The notes under the pieces are model-generated. The model did no database searches, was not told the DNA's origin, and saw only the letters and a program-made list of their open reading frames with translations. Shown piece by piece: positions 6,944 through 16,700 of a stretch of DNA of 59,285 bases; the stretch's first letter is position 1; each line of letters opens with the position of its first letter. The stretch spans positions 4,706,352 to 4,765,636 of the forward strand of contig BFEA01000025.1 of the NCBI GenBank assembly GCA_003427395.1, written 5' to 3'. The stretch is from Chara braunii (taxonomy: Eukaryota; Plantae; Charophyceae). Made by a program: the position numbers and the translations under genes.

Positions 6944-9192
6944 AATTCTCTGTAAAATATGACAACTCTGGTTTTTCATTTGAGAGATAACAACTGAAGC
7001 ATAGCTTAGGATGTGACTTCTTTTTGTTTTCTTATTAGAGGTATTTTTTATTTTCTATACAATTGCTGATATTCATTCTGAATCTCCTTACAGTCCAGTA
7101 ATAAAATATTGTGATAAAAGTGGTGACGACTTTAAACTTTCAAATGTGTTTTTTCTTTTTCCTGTGAGTGATTGTGGATACACTTTTGTGAATGACTGAG
7201 TTTATGTGAATGACTATGCATGTGAAAGGATAAGAATATTTGGCATGAAGATACTCTATCTCATATCCTGTTGTGACAAAATTTCTGAAAGATATGAGCC
7301 ATGTAGGTGGTAATGAGGCTCATGCCAGAACTTTGTTCCAGGTCCATAACGGGATGTTGTCATCTTCCTTGTGGAAGGGGGTGGCTACATTATGATCGAA
7401 AAGAAGGAAGGTTTTGCGATTTTATCAGGGCGTTGTCAGTAGAGTAGGCGACCACGATTTACTGCGAGGGTTGGGTTGGTCTCATAACTTTGAAATAGTC
7501 AGGGTCGCCTTGTCCTCATAACTAAGGTTTAACCAACCTCTGGTTGTATAGGAGAAGGTTGTCTTACCCTATTAGCAGCAGAATGATAAGATTGTGAGAC
7601 TGGAATCGGAGGGAAGGTGGTGAGACTGGAATCGGAGGGAAGGTGGTGAGGCCTGTCTTATCCTTCAAAGGATTACACCACTCCTCGACGTTAATCACAT
7701 GAGAGTCAAAATAGTCCTACATGGTATGCTATCGAGTATCAAAAGGATGAGTTCACTCTGTTGGATGAATAAAAGGAAGATGTGGATAGATTTTTTCTCT
7801 CATGAATGGTTAAAATCCAGGACATTAATACATTTTGAAAGACCTGCAGGGGTTAATCCTGACTCATTTGGGAAACAAGGTTAAACGCAAGTTTTCTGTG
7901 AATGGAGAAAAAAAACTTGAGGTATTTGTTTTGATGTTTTTCCTGACTGTAGTATAATGTGAGTACCCTTATGTGTACGGGAGACCCAGGTTAAATTCAT
8001 GGCGGCGTTGTGTACGTTGAGGTGTTATGAAGAGCATCCCTGTAAGCTCAAGAGACCCGGGTTAGATTCCCGACAATTAAGGAAATTCCCCAAGTGGATA
8101 AGAATAACATTATCGATTGATCAGATTATGTTTGGATCTAGCTGGAGGGTTTCCAGTACCTTTATGAGAGACAAAATTTTGAGTGGTCGCCAGTGGGATA
8201 ATGCTGGAACCATCCAGAAAGAAGTCCACATAAATTGAAGGCATCAAACCAGCAGTATCAGCACATATTTTGGTAAAAAGGGGAGGTTATCTATCATAGT
8301 TTTTTTCTGGTAAACACCTCTTATATGACGATTTTGGATAAAAGTGAATGACGTGCAAGTCATTCATTGCGGCCTGGGAATGTTGTCCGGACAGAAACCC
8401 TGACAAGGGTATCTGCCCTGTATTTTCAATATCGGATGGTGTCTGAATTCTTATGAAAGTTTTGAACGGTTTGGTCTGATAAAATAGAAATACTGCCGGA
8501 ATGTTCCGACCCGTCCACGATTTGAATGAAATTTAAAATTTTATGCAGTCGTTTATTTGTCGACAGATGTAATGGCAAGGGTGGACGGTGTAACCAGACG
8601 CCCTTACATTAAAAACGAGGCCGGAAAGAGAGACGGCGGTGAAAACACTAAAATAAAATATTGTTTTGACTAAAATTTGGTCGCGCGACTGTTAAGCCGC
8701 GCGATTCGGGACCAGAAAAACCAAAAATTAGTCATGTCAGGGGTACGGCGGCAATAAGAAGGGCTAACATGGCTAAGAGTGTCGTGTCACTTCAAAGAGA
8801 AGGTACCGTCAGGGGTCCGAGGGCGAATCCACGGACAAAAAAGGTGGATTGCCTGGCCTACTGGGCCAAACCCAGTTGGCCACGTGACGGTGCGACCTGC
8901 CCTTGTAAGGGATAGGTAGACTGTACATGTCTAGCCTGGAACGTAGGCAGCCTACAAGGCGGCAACCCTTCAAATAGAAGGGCAGTTGGTATAGCTCCCG
9001 TGATAGGAGCTAGCACAGTAGGTACAATATTTGACTTCCACTCAGCTGATGCTGGGATCGAGCCTCATGATACTCTACCTCAGCGAGCTCCTTTTTGGAA
9101 TTGCCCACTACATGAGCATGAGGCGCGACCATTTTCGGTCGTGAGATCGTTAGATCGTTAGATCTCACGGCCGAAATCGGCCGCGTGATCGG

Positions 9193-9240
9193 AGCATGGC
9201 CCCTGCGCAAGGATGACACGCATAAATCAAGAAATGGCAA
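9193..9240 (+). pseudogene. U6: U6 snRNA 3'-half fragment
   Basis: AGCATGGCCCCTGCGCAAGGATGACACGCATAAATCAAGAAATGG matches the plant U6 AGC triad, ISL and 3' region; the 5' stem and ACAGAGA box are absent. Confidence 0.93.
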
Positions 9241-9568
9241 AAAAAAAAGGGGGGGAGGCTGGTGCAGGCTGCAGTGGCCGTTGGCTTATGCCAACGACAT
9301 TTCTCGTTAAAAAAAAAAAAAAAAAAAAAAAAAAACAAGCGTCAGATGGCGCCCCGAGAAGAACAGAGACCTATACTCCTTGAAAAGTAGACACCATTTT
9401 CAACGGTGTCAGACCATTTTTTTTGTTTTTTCTGCTCTTAGATTTTTTTATATTTTTTTTATATTTTTTTTTTTTTTAATTTTAGTTCAGCGCCCGTTCA
9501 TTTTAAAAACGGGCAGCTCGGCATTGTAACGCCTGAACTAGACGCTTATGACGCCTAGGTGCAGGCGC

Positions 9569-9647
9569 AGAGAGAGAGAGAGAGAGAGAGGAAGAGAGAG
9601 AGAGAGAGGAAAGAGAGAGAGAGAGAGAGAGAGAGAGAGAGAGAGAG
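9569..9647. repeat. (GA)n microsatellite
   Basis: Direct reading; abuts the hammerhead region. Confidence 0.95.
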
Positions 9648-13376: not shown

Positions 13377-13720
13377 CATCATAAGCCTCTAGTTCATGCG
13401 TTACAATGCCCAGCTGCCCGTTTATAAGACGAACGGGCGCTGAACTAAAATCTAAAAAAAAATCTAAGAAAATCTAAGAAAAAAAAAAAAAAACGGTCTA
13501 ACACCGTTGAAAATGGTGTCTGCTTTACAGGGACTATACGTCTCTGTTCTTCTCAGTGCACCATTTGACGCTTGTTTTTTTTTTTTTTTTTTTTTTTTTA
13601 TATAGAGATATGCCGTTGGCATAAGCCAACGGCTACTGCAACCTGCGCCAACCTTGCTGGCATTCCCCCCCCCCTTTCTCCTGCCGATGCACAGGCCCGA
13701 GTTCGATTTTGTAAGGAATC

Positions 13721-13780
13721 AAAAAAAAAAATTTGTCATTTCTCAATTTATGCGTGTCATCCTTGCGCAGGGGCCATGCT
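13721..13780 (-). pseudogene. U6: U6 snRNA 3'-half fragment with oligo-U tail
   Basis: Reverse complement AGCATGGCCCCTGCGCAAGGATGACACGCATAAATTGAGAAATGACAAA followed by a T tract. Confidence 0.93.
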
Positions 13781-16700
13781 GCAATAGCGCGGCCGTTTTC
13801 GACTGTAAGATCTAACGATCTCGCGGCCGAAAATGGCCGCGCCTCATGCTCATGTAGTGGGCAGCTCCAAAAAGGAGCTAGCCCAGTTAGAGTATCACGA
13901 GGCTCGATCCCAGCATCAGCTGAGTGGAAGTCGAATGTTGTACCTACTGGGCTAGATCCTATCATGGAAGCTATACCAGCCGCCCTTCTATTTGAAGGGT
14001 TGCCGCCCAGTAGGCTGACTGCGTTCCAAGCTAAGCAGGTACAGTCTGCCTATCCCTTCCAAGGGCAGGTTGCATTGTCACGTGGCCAACTGGGTTTGGC
14101 CTAGTAGGCCAGGCAATCCACCATTTTTGTTCGTGGATTCGCCCTCGGGCTCCTGATGGTACGTTCTCTTTGAAGTGACACGGCACTCTTATAGCCGTGT
14201 TAGCCCTTCTTATTGCCGCCGTACCCCTGACACGGCTAATTTTTGGTTTTTCTAGTCCTGAATCGCGAGGCTTAACAGTCGCGCGACCAAATTTTAGTCA
14301 AAACAATATTTTATGTTAGTGTTTTCACCGCCGTCTCTCTCTCCAACCTCGTTTTTAATGTAAGGGCGTCTGGTTACACCGTCCACCCTTGCCATTGTAT
14401 CTGTCGACAGATTGACGGCTGCATAAAATTTTAAATTTCATTCAAATCGCGGACGAGTCGGAATATTCCAGCAGTATTTCTATTTCGTCAAACCAAACCT
14501 TTCAAAACTTTCATCAGAATTCGAACATCGTCCGATATTGAAAATACAGGGCAGATACCCTTGTCAGGGTTTCTGTCCCGACAACGGCTCCTTCTCGGGT
14601 GCCACCATCCTTTTTTGGCCTACTTAGGCTCTAAATCGCGCGGCTCAACAACCAAGCGTCATTATTTTAGGTAAGATTGGTTTAACATTCCCGTGACCAT
14701 GTCCTTTTGCGGCCCTATAAGGAACCATGTCTGACTGGTCACACTGCCGATTATTGTCATTATGTCCGGAAAAGAAAATTCAGTTTTCTCGGTTATAGGG
14801 TAAGTCTAAATAAACTTTTGGAAGACGTCAATCTCATCAAGTCTCTCAATTCATTGGAAAAGTCGGATAACGTTCGACATTGAAAAACCTGAGCAGATAC
14901 CCTTGTAAGGGTTTCTGTTCCGATACCATAACTCGGAAAAGCTAAAGCGTCTGAGCGAGGCCCGCGCGGAGTTGTATAAAAATAACATAACCGCTAAGGG
15001 AACCATAATGCTCAGTCATGTGTACTCACTTGATCTGCTATCATGGCGATGCTTCATGCGTTACGCACATTCTAGCAACCTCTCATGGGTTTGAGGATTG
15101 CGTGTGACACTCACATGTCGAAAGTGAAATACCGTGAAGGGTTTCTCCTTCACGATATTGAACGGTTTATGGATAAGACGTCCAGCCCTTGCGGCAACCG
15201 TGTCTTTTAGGCAGTGGGTAACGATAAGCAAGGGGCGCAAGTCCGGCTCATGAGGGAAACCCTTTTGTGTCGGACCAGAGTCTAAGATATCATGGACAAA
15301 GACCTCAAATGTCAGGCTCAAGACTAATGTCCGAAGAATAATCTAAAAAGTAAAACCCCTTGGAGACGGGGTTCGCTCGTCCTTCCCCTACGAAAAGAAA
15401 ATACAAATGTAACGGGTTGACGAGCAATTCACTATACTCAAACTAAGTCTTAGTCCGATCTAAGGTTGAGCGCTAAACCTTTTACTCGGCTACTCCTGCC
15501 TGTTCGTTAGATGTGTGCGGCAAGAGGAAAAAAAAAAAAAAAAAAGGGGGAGTCTCGGAGGAAATCAGGAAGAGTTATTCTCACAACCATAGTTGAACTT
15601 TGTCACACACACCCTGCACTCATTCATCCATATTGTCCTTAATTCAGGAGCGAACCCTCACTCCCATACATACATGTACATATATGAAGCCCAATGAAAA
15701 TCCATACGCAGATGTTAGAAAACGTGGTCAACCCCTTTGCCCCCATGTTCATGTCTCACACGCCCCTTTCCGACCCCCACTCAGCAAAGTATTACCCGCC
15801 CGTCCCGATTCACATAGCTTTGCATGACTATTCAAGAGAGGTTTCAAAGATAGGTTTTCTTTCATATGAAAATGTTTTTCACCAACAGGGTTACAAACAT
15901 CTAGACGTGGATATCATGATGGGTAGGAGTTGAGTGGCAAACCGACCTGTTATCAATCTGACAGCAGAAGCTCAAGACTTCGAAGAAAACACTTGCAGGT
16001 AGCAATGACTTGCGTCACAAAATAAAAGCAGACATCACCTATCGAATTAACGGAGTTAGAATCTGTATTGCACTCTAAGCTACTTAGCAGTAACGTCTGG
16101 TGACAATGTGAAAATCCTTAAAATTTCGGCAACACTTCCTTTAGGGAAGTGTGCTCGAAGAATGTTAACTCTACCAAATCTGAAAAGAAAAACTTGTGAC
16201 TAAAAAAATATATGAAAATAAACTGACTTTTTGGTTTCAGTATAAATTTCGGCAGCACTTCCTTTAGAAAGGAAGGCTTCCAAAATTCTTACTGTCCCCA
16301 AAGACTAAACTATATTCTATCCTTGCTGACATGTCTGAAACTTGACTAACTTTGAGTATTTAACAAAAATTTTGGCAGCATCTCCCCTAAGGGAAAGAGA
16401 CTCTCATAACTTATATTAACTTAGAGGTTAGCGAATGTCCTACAAAAAACAATCATGCATGAAAAAACAAATGCGAAAACAAAAGTGGATATCTACCTGC
16501 CTATTACTCAAGCATAAGGCGAGCACTAACATACTACCCTACTAAAGCAAAAAACAGACAGAACTTCAGTAAAAAGACAAGTCATTGTCAGCAAGCATGT
16601 CATATCCATAATGCATTCAGCCAATTCAAAACAAGGGTTTATTTATTCAAAAATTTTATCTCTTGCTTGTCCTGATCACAAAAAACATAAGTCTTGTATC

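Follow-up and report, generated by a model that had tools for sequence, protein, structure and literature searches.

A probable Ty3/Gypsy LTR carrying a U6 snRNA 3' half and a nested hammerhead retroelement in Chara braunii

Organisation of the locus

Two inverted copies of a module of about 2.2 kb, approximately 89% identical to each other, are visible in the window, the 59,285-nt stretch of Chara braunii DNA that was analysed. Copy 1 extends over 8381-10543 (+) and copy 2 over 14586-12393 (-), with a gap of 1.85 kb between them. The matching blocks are 8382-9241, 9256-9555 and 9618-10543 (+) versus 14585-13732, 13654-13375 and 13320-12393 (-), and 224 mismatches were counted in the 2104 aligned columns of the colinear alignment, a divergence of 10.6%. 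The order of the parts is common to both copies: a terminal hairpin, a long hairpin, the 3' half of U6, A/T runs, (GA)n, a type III hammerhead in antisense orientation and further hairpins. Homopolymers and simple repeats of the module are (GA)n, A27, T runs and a G/C run of 34. The colinear alignment, the Rfam matches and the folds confirm the two inverted copies with the same part order that had been reported in a first-pass annotation. Its statement that no protein coding is recognisable in the module was also upheld, as no coding signal was found there and the one module ORF that was examined has no relatives. The features are listed in Table 1.

Table 1. Features of element A, LTR B and the two module copies (positions in the window)
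Feature	Position	Strand	Remarks
Element A 5' LTR, 3' part	1-688	+	truncated by window start; ends ...GTGACA
Sense hammerhead unit in element A 5' LTR	37-92 plus its tail	+	Hammerhead_3, 43.6 bits; (TA)n also in this LTR part
Conserved LTR tail "X" (510 nt) in element A 5' LTR	165-682	+	89% identical to 12312-11802
Primer-binding-site-like TGGCGTCGTTGCTGGG	691-706	+	sequence read; putative placement relative to LTR end
Element A internal region	689-8380	+	decayed gag-pol, many frame breaks; only short stop-free stretches
Module copy 1, probable U3-side body of element A 3' LTR	8381-10543	+	starts TGTTGTCC
Hairpin at LTR terminus (CAGAAACCCT/AGGGTATCTG)	8388-8418	+	fold z -3 to -4
Imperfect hairpin of about 25 bp directly 5' of U6 piece	9120-9190 (copy 2: about 13785-13845)	+ (copy 2: -)	fold
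U6 snRNA 3' half, copy 1	9193-9240	+	model positions about 51-95; U tail plus about 50 following nt deleted relative to copy 2
Nested hammerhead retroelement, copy 1	9568-9739	-	ribozyme 9685-9739, short tail, (CT)n on own strand
Cluster of short hairpins (the "further hairpins" of the first-pass annotation)	9955-10543	+	folds
LTR B, solo or truncated, 2785 nt	11802-14586	-	module + microsatellite + X tail
Nested hammerhead retroelement, copy 2	13199-13342	+	ribozyme 13199-13253, tail, (TC)n, (TG)n
U6 snRNA 3' half, copy 2	13725-13780	-	ends in U tract (T11); similarity begins at AGCAUGG
Extra LTR-start-like fragment upstream of LTR B	14860-14929	-	81% identical to first 64 nt of LTR

The region before copy 1 belongs to a decayed coding element, here called element A. 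Pfam matches on its + strand between the LTRs were obtained for RVT_1 at 4348-4671 (weak), RNase H at 4813-5097 (8e-18), integrase H2C2 at 5743-6120 (2e-9) and SH3 Tf2-1 at 6503-6940, and the order of reverse transcriptase, RNase H and integrase is that of Gypsy elements. Homology between element A and LTR B starts exactly at TG (8381/14586), where the internal region of element A ends. The LTR termini have the form TG...CA, from TGTTGTCC at 8381 (CGTTGTC in LTR B) to GTGACA at 688. A TGG-type primer-binding-like motif begins 2 nt past the putative end of the element A 5' LTR; no tRNA genes were found in 10000-59285, and no tRNA was matched to the motif. At the polypurine-tract position before 8381, only a weak purine run (GGGAA) is present. 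In LTR B, the module (14586-12393) is joined to the X tail (12312-11802) by a microsatellite made of (CA)n/(TA)n and a 17-mer (12392-12313), and the last approximately 9 nt of the LTR are missing; no Gypsy domains occur on the minus strand upstream of LTR B. The homology of copy 1 to copy 2 stops at 10543, after which the X tail is absent.

The identity of the module as LTR sequence is supported by the homology that starts at TG, the continuity with the X tail, the ...CA end 2 nt before the primer-binding-like site and the Gypsy-order domains. The module is probably the first 2.2 kb, or U3-side body, of a Ty3/Gypsy LTR of about 2.8 kb, a mosaic that was built in the common ancestor of the copies and then passively copied. 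Copy 1 would then be the 3' LTR of the decayed coding element (1-10543), and copy 2 a second, inverted LTR, either solo or truncated. Regarding the earlier description of copy 2 as lying inside an LTR, the LTR context stands but the position does not, since the module itself makes up the 5' four-fifths of LTR B. From the two copies visible, the association of the module with the Gypsy family and its probable spread with that family are supported. A separable cargo cassette is not supported: the 5' edge is the LTR terminus, and the 3' side continues into conserved LTR sequence.

An alternative, in which a separate non-autonomous element or a block inserted into an originally short LTR forms the module, which would then be genuine cargo bounded by ends of its own, is unlikely. 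At about 22983-24138, a related LTR combines an X-like tail with a preceding stretch of only about 600 nt that is devoid of the module, and this leaves room for entry of the module as an insert. The stretch directly before X also differs between the element A 5' LTR and LTR B, and the LTR-start motif GTATCTGCCCTG reappears near the module end. However, with only about 70% identity in X, the short LTR belongs to another family, and insertion of a hammerhead unit at (TA)n in the element A 5' LTR accounts for the difference before X. Moreover, the 5' edge of the module coincides with the TG terminus that follows the element A internal region and is preceded by no LTR sequence.

The U6 piece

The U6 piece lies in sense orientation in the module, with LTR sequence on either side. 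The Rfam match in copy 2 (13725-13822 (-), 47.9 bits) exceeds the gathering score of 44, and that in copy 1 (9192-9248 (+)) reaches 35.7 bits; true similarity to U6 is limited to model positions about 50-105. Within this region, 35 nt in both copies are identical to the Rfam U6 consensus core (the internal stem-loop region), followed by T11 in copy 2 only. Between the copies, 35/35 core positions agree (P=0.019, uncorrected), and the U6 part shows 3/48 mismatches. The U6 5' half and the ACAGAGA box are absent in both module copies, neither of which qualifies as a full-length U6 gene. U6 promoters are located upstream of the gene, so that no promoter, including one of the A/B-box type, is known within the U6 3' half.

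Elsewhere in the window, further U6 5' parts are located at 30446-30545 and 46884-46947, a U2 5' part at 45238-45351 and a piece of LSU rRNA at 21767-22093.

The nested hammerhead retroelement

The Rfam model for the type III hammerhead, with a gathering score of 48.5, matched copy 2 at 13199-13253 (+) with 46.9 bits (E-value 5e-8), just below that score, and copy 1 at 9685-9739 (-) with 39.7 bits (E-value 5e-6), also below it. The three helices are present, and both hammerheads are antisense to the U6 part of the module. In copy 2, the core is complete (CUGAUGA ... GAAA) with a GUC site, the cut is predicted between 13206 and 13207, and the hammerhead fold has -20.0 kcal/mol, compared with an MFE of -24.8 kcal/mol. 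In copy 1, the core is broken by a G->A change (CUGAUGA->CUAAUGA), and the first pair of stem I is A-C.

A 29-nt hammerhead core pattern gave 4 matches in the window against a chance expectation of 0. The same ribozyme unit is present at two window sites outside the module copies, and at one of them it reads sense within an LTR belonging to this family: 47-130 (+, sense in the element A 5' LTR) is 77% identical to 13208-13296 (+, antisense in LTR B). The outer stem III pairs differ between 37-92 and the ribozyme copy of the module, yet pairing is kept. It can be observed that a ribozyme, a short related tail and a microsatellite, which is (TA)n, (CT)n(TG)n or (CA)n, occur together at every ribozyme site in the window. 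The (CT)n of the copy 1 unit reads (GA)n/A17/G9 on the LTR strand, and the copy 2 unit is followed by G34 at 13343-13376.

Judged by comparison of these sequences, the hammerhead and (GA)n are one nested, 5'-truncated antisense copy of an independent type III hammerhead retroelement, and its insertion accounts for both together. Such a retroelement would end in, or target, microsatellites, and its nested retroposition would have occurred in a tolerant U3 region. The idea of ribozyme-cut ends as part of an RNA system is not sustained by a nested insert of this kind, mutated in the core of copy 1 and found elsewhere in the other orientation.

Fold stability and divergence between the copies

The LTR-start, pre-U6, multi-stem and end hairpins have z values of -3 to -10 relative to shuffles in both copies. 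The multi-stem element of the first-pass annotation is included in the hairpin cluster at 9955-10543 if it corresponds to 10095-10262. For the pre-U6 hairpin, energies of -40.1 and -38.8 kcal/mol were obtained (z -5.3 and -7.1), with 10/60 mismatches (17%) plus an 8-nt indel between the copies. The hairpin at the LTR terminus shows 1/39 mismatch and is also retained in the older LTR-start fragment at 14860-14929. From copy 1 to copy 2, 9% of paired positions are changed versus 11% of unpaired positions. Singly changed pairs still pair in 48-60% of cases versus about 50% expected under neutral decay, with ascertainment counted, and 5/6 doubly changed pairs are compensatory. The palindromes and homopolymer runs were probably once near-perfect and are now decaying neutrally.

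In the hammerhead part, 3/55 mismatches separate the copies, compared with 10.6% module-wide. The U6, hammerhead and hairpin parts are not clearly below 10.6%, so that divergence at the neutral rate, which the first-pass annotation had named among the findings that would refute its idea, roughly applies. No sign was found in the sequence that the element makes use of the U6 piece, the ribozyme or the hairpins.

A functional structured-RNA cassette, selected as helping the Gypsy family or its parasite, is decidedly unlikely. Its U6 half would serve for La/LSm binding or nuclear retention, its hairpins for structure and its ribozyme for RNA ends. The fully identical U6 core, the intact ribozyme core of copy 2, the five doubly changed pairs that still pair and hairpins far more stable than shuffles in both copies are all in its favour. 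Against it, the ribozyme runs antisense to the transcript of the LTR, its copy 1 form would be dead, the active fold in copy 2 lies 4.8 kcal/mol above the MFE, and the same unit is oppositely oriented in another LTR of the family. The claim of U6-derived signals is not supported by a piece that is without the ACAGAGA box and the 5' half and, in copy 1, without the U tail that La/LSm would need. As for a system acting through its hairpins, the retention of base pairs fits neutral decay, and the divergence of the pre-U6 hairpin is as high as 17%.

Very improbably, the RNA scraps of the LTR have been co-opted, with the U6 stem-loop and U tail recruiting La/LSm or aiding packaging and the antisense ribozyme cutting antisense read-through. 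The U6 parts may then act in the 3' untranslated part of the genomic RNA, and antisense cutting may limit both double-stranded RNA and the silencing of the family. That the 2.2-kb stretch was simply duplicated once, locally and in inverted orientation, without connection to LTR biology, is very unlikely: the two visible copies are indeed inverted and close together, but the X tail of copy 2 reappears 11 kb away as the end of the element A 5' LTR, also at 89% identity, copy 1 starts at the LTR/internal boundary, an additional LTR-start fragment is present at 14860-14929, and the divergence of 10.6% is compatible with separate old family members.

Proposed origin of the probable LTR mosaic

For the U6 piece of the probable LTR mosaic, a 5'-truncated U6 (about nt 50 to the U tail) may have been acquired by the reverse transcriptase of the element, most likely through a template switch onto co-packaged U6. 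The switch would have entered at the U6 3' U tract, with a return jump at about the base of the internal stem-loop. The same product would be expected from a retroposition of U6 that was target-primed and 5'-truncated. U6 is packaged in retroviral particles (PMC4378196, PMC4997597), and the reverse transcriptases of LTR elements capture cellular RNAs via template switches guided by microsimilarity (Tan et al. 2016, PMC5131818). No published reports of U6 pieces in LTRs were found.

If the reading as an LTR mosaic is right, the locus clearly exemplifies, within the green lineage, an LTR whose U3 part serves as a sink, both for nested ribozyme retroelements and for RNAs that the reverse transcriptase of the element itself has copied (U6 here, with U2, U6 5' parts and rRNA nearby). 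The growth of very long LTRs in this large algal genome would thereby be explained. A warning would also follow, as snRNA and ribozyme matches from genome scans there would mostly be LTR passengers. Furthermore, type III hammerheads would lie beside Gypsy LTRs in a streptophyte alga, which bears on the origin of plant retrozymes.

Comparison with known systems

Plant LTR retrozymes (Cervera et al. 2016, PMC4918200) share with the locus a type III hammerhead in an LTR and an association with Ty3/Gypsy machinery. They are non-coding, 600-1000 nt long, with a sense ribozyme in each LTR of about 350 nt that leads to circular RNA. Identity with them was rejected on the basis of a single antisense, nested, 5'-truncated ribozyme, the LTR of about 2.8 kb and the gag-pol remnants. 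In ending a short ribozyme repeat at (TA)n, (CA)n or (CT)n, the nested unit resembles non-LTR retrozymes and Penelope-linked hammerhead elements (PMC7229834, PMC8557442, bioRxiv 10.64898/2026.07.22.740005); the animal non-LTR retrozymes carry type I ribozymes, whereas the unit here is of type III. No autonomous partner of the nested unit was found. Retrozymes have been described from flowering plants and animals, and algae are without mention there (PMC4918200, PMC7229834, PMC8557442, bioRxiv 10.64898/2026.07.22.740005).

With Cassandra, Helenus and Ajax ("TRIMp3", Kojima 2024, PMC10886601), the common point is a proposed origin from a small retroelement inserted into an LTR. These TRIMs are shorter than 1 kb and their 5S or tRNA piece supplies an internal Pol III promoter, in contrast to a gag-pol element of about 10 kb with an LTR of about 2.8 kb; no tRNA-like part was found in 10000-59285, and the element falls outside that group. 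U6/L1 chimeric pseudogenes (PMC4476161, PMC6789731) likewise have U6 joined at its 3' end to retroelement sequence. There, a full-length U6 stands at the 5' end of a 5'-truncated L1 or mRNA copy; a chimera of the L1 type was rejected here, the U6 being 5'-truncated with LTR sequence on both flanks.

In LTR-mediated retroposition (PMC5131818), as here, a copy of a cellular RNA lies between LTR-retrotransposon sequences, the chimera is copied onward with the element, and the junction falls at a short homopolymer, in the present case where the U tract meets a T run. The differences are that half a Pol III snRNA is involved rather than an mRNA, that the LTR (U3) in which it lies belongs to a coding-type element, and that several putatively captured snRNA and rRNA scraps occur in one window. 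Mechanistically, the proposed capture extends processes that are already known and does not amount to a new system.

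Organization of the inverted pair

The two copies of the ~2.2-kb module lie in inverted orientation, with 8382-9241, 9256-9555 and 9618-10543 (+) matching 14585-13732, 13654-13375 and 13320-12393 (-), respectively, in a repeat search and self-BLAST of the window. MAFFT aligns the entire 2.2 kb of the two copies colinearly; 224 of the 2104 aligned columns are mismatched (10.6%), and several indels fall in homopolymer and microsatellite tracts. In both copies, true similarity to the Rfam U6 model begins with AGCAUGG at approximately model position 50, and comparison with this model demonstrates that the U6 5' half and the ACAGAGA region are absent from both. 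The two module hammerheads are located on the strand opposite to the U6 piece, and a 29-nt hammerhead core pattern, allowing up to 3 mismatches, has 4 matches in the window (0 expected). The hairpins listed in the first-pass annotation fold far better than shuffled sequences in both copies (z from -3 to -10). Runs of A27, C/G34 and T are also present in the module. What that annotation had observed, namely two inverted copies with a U6 half, an antisense type III hammerhead and hairpins, is confirmed by these searches, alignments and shuffle folds.

Positions of features in the window (Rfam gathering scores: U6, 44; Hammerhead_3, 48.5; U2, 46)
Feature	Position	Strand	Remarks
Element A, decayed Gypsy element	1-10543	+	5' LTR cut by window start
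Hammerhead in 5' LTR of A	37-92	+ (sense)	43.6 bits (Hammerhead_3); cleavage site GUU; MFE structure is the hammerhead
Tail X in 5' LTR of A	165-682	+	
Module copy 1	8381-10543	+	
U6 match, copy 1	9192-9248	+	35.7 bits
Hammerhead, copy 1	9685-9739	-	39.7 bits, just below gathering score
Spacer between module copies	10544-11801		1.26 kb, unrelated sequence
Tandem repeat within spacer	11176-11390		54-nt unit, ~3 units
LTR B	14586-11802	-	without its last ~9 nt
Tail X in LTR B	12312-11802	-	
Module copy 2	14586-12393	-	
Hammerhead, copy 2	13199-13253	+	46.9 bits, just below gathering score
U6 match, copy 2	13725-13822	-	47.9 bits, above gathering score
LTR-start-like fragment	14860-14929		70 nt
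Tandem array	16834-18004		66-nt period, ~18 units, 80-84% identical
LSU rRNA piece	21767-22093	-	model 359-664; 41 bits; non-coding repeat context
Shorter related LTR	~22983-24138	-	
U6 5' part	30446-30545	-	46.7 bits, passes gathering score; ACAGAGA present
X-like LTR tails, head to head at 32683/32684	32487-32923		adjoin N run 32942-33351
U2 snRNA 5' part	45238-45351	+	49.6 bits; 3' domains deleted
U6 5' part	46884-46947	+	
Decayed hammerhead core	50364-50404	-	3 mismatches to pattern; related tail, then (CA)n

The module as the probable body of an LTR

LTR B, the second and inverted LTR, runs on past 12393 through an 80-nt (CA)n/(TA)n/17-mer microsatellite into tail X, a stretch of 510 nt that is 89% identical to the corresponding tail of A's 5' LTR. 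In the plus-strand copy, X ends in GTGACA at 688, with the TGGCGTCGTTGCTGGG motif 2 nt further on. Beyond this motif lie 7.7 kb in which reverse transcriptase, RNase H, integrase zinc-binding and Tf2-type SH3 domains follow one another as in Gypsy elements, all encoded in interrupted frames. The internal region of A ends at 8380, and copy 1 begins at 8381 with TGTTGTCC. Since X is shared by LTR B and the 5' LTR of A, and the internal region with the Gypsy domains ends where copy 1 starts, the family LTR appears from the sequence to be ~2.8 kb long and to consist of module, microsatellite and X. On this view, copy 1 represents the 3' LTR of the decayed element A, its homology stopping at 10543 with no X following, and copy 2 as the body of LTR B. 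The first-pass annotation had described an LTR cargo module, with copy 2 inside an LTR. This is not borne out, because homology between A and B starts exactly at TG and the flanks before TG are unrelated, as is typical of an LTR terminus rather than of an insert within an LTR. That LTR B might be the downstream LTR of an element on the minus strand was rejected, as no Gypsy domains were found on that strand in 15-23 kb.

Further LTR pieces are present in the window. The shorter LTR at ~22983-24138 carries an X-like tail ~70% identical to the A/B family, preceded by only ~600 nt with (TA)n-like tracts near the start and no module. The head-to-head pair of X-like tails either marks a further junction of inverted LTRs or arose in assembly.

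Constraint on the module parts

Divergence of the U6 and hammerhead parts at the neutral rate, which the first-pass annotation had named as evidence against a functional system, is roughly what comparison of the two copies gave: mismatches number 3/55 in the hammerhead, 3/48 in U6 and 10/60 (plus an 8-nt indel) in the hairpin before U6, with no clear reduction relative to the 10.6% overall. The 35-nt U6 core alone carries no change (uncorrected P = 0.019), and conservation is equally high in other 100-nt windows, such as one with 4/100 at 8582-8731. The U tract and ~50 nt beyond it are gone from copy 1. The hammerhead core of copy 1 is altered from CUGAUGA to CUAAUGA, and its first stem I pair is A-C. 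Copy 2 retains an intact core; its hammerhead fold, however, reaches -20.0 kcal/mol compared with -24.8 kcal/mol for a competing fold.

Helix pairs were analyzed outside 9865-9929, a T-rich tract. Within predicted local helices, 9% of paired and 11% of unpaired positions are changed. Where one side of a pair is changed, 28-35 of 58 still pair, 60% at most; a pair was counted only if paired in the reference copy, so that ~50% of single changes would look kept under neutral decay. Five of the 6 doubly changed pairs are compensatory; under the same decay, close to half would be expected to be so if transitions outnumber transversions 2:1. Selection on the hairpins was rejected, since the raw retention of 60%, high at first sight, matches the ~50% expected when pairing is conditioned on the reference copy. 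For this reason we see the hairpins as probable decaying palindromes rather than selected RNA stems.

A nested hammerhead unit

The hammerhead in the 5' LTR of A is oriented opposite to that of the module. Its tail extends to ~152, followed by (TA)n at 153-165, directly before X. The region 47-130 is 77% identical to 13208-13296, comprising the ribozyme and ~40 nt after it. When the ribozymes are aligned, each continues into a related tail of short length and from there into a microsatellite, which is (TA)n from 153, (CA)n at 50.3 kb and, in the module, (CT)n(TG)n. LTRs of a single family thus hold the same ribozyme unit at more than one site and in either orientation, and on these grounds it is regarded as a putative independent retroelement ending at microsatellites. 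The (GA)n and hammerhead, given as separate parts by the first-pass annotation, are both present, and together they appear to form one nested insert, the (GA)n being the CT-rich end of the hammerhead retroelement on the other strand. Outer stem III pairs differ between 37-92 and the module ribozyme yet still pair, consistent with a ribozyme that was once functional in its own family.

Origin of the U6 piece

At its 3' end the U6 piece is complete and meets the LTR at a T run, whereas its 5' truncation point falls close to the foot of the internal stem-loop. Elsewhere in the window, U6 5' parts span model positions ~1-66 and so complement the module's 3' half; pieces of U2 snRNA and LSU rRNA also occur, and ARAGORN found no tRNA-like parts in 10000-59285. 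U6 and other nascent non-coding RNAs are packaged in retroviral particles (PMC4378196, PMC4997597), and LTR-element reverse transcriptases form chimeras by microsimilarity-guided template switches (PMC5131818). We infer that U6 would have been copied in through two template switches during minus-strand synthesis, probably within U3, a region that may tolerate additional sequence; once in, the piece would have passed to all descendants. An identical product would result had U6 entered the LTR by target-primed, 5'-truncated retroposition. Ligation of U6 to a ribozyme-cut 5'-OH end by the RtcB route (PMC6789731) was rejected, as T11 and unrelated sequence follow the U6 3' end and the ribozyme lies ~470 nt from U6 on the other strand.

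Relatives and comparison with known systems

One module ORF has no relatives in the protein collection, exact look-up of an ORF from the window returned no record, and exact 30-mer and ribozyme patterns had no match in metagenome contigs. For the pol piece of element A, the sole relative is a 1011-nt contig of JGI metagenome 3300045518, which encodes a protein 77% identical to the integrase/SH3 region, implying that a related Gypsy element is present in that environmental sample.

No literature report was found of a 2.8-kb coding-type Gypsy LTR in which a U6 half lacking a promoter is combined with an antisense ribozyme element as a nested insert. Cassandra, Helenus and Ajax carry small-RNA-derived pieces in their LTRs, but are TRIMs in which this piece serves as Pol III promoter (PMC10886601), whereas here the U6 half is promoter-less and the LTR, of 2.8 kb, belongs to a coding-type Gypsy element. 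Plant retrozymes also contain type III hammerheads in LTRs; these are small and non-coding with the ribozyme in sense (PMC4918200, PMC7761336), in contrast to the antisense ribozyme found here within a nested element in the LTR of a coding-type element. U6 chimeras are known for L1 (PMC4476161, PMC6789731), while in the present locus the U6 half is within such a Gypsy LTR. None of these systems matches the LTR described here, and we rate the locus as a variant of known processes.
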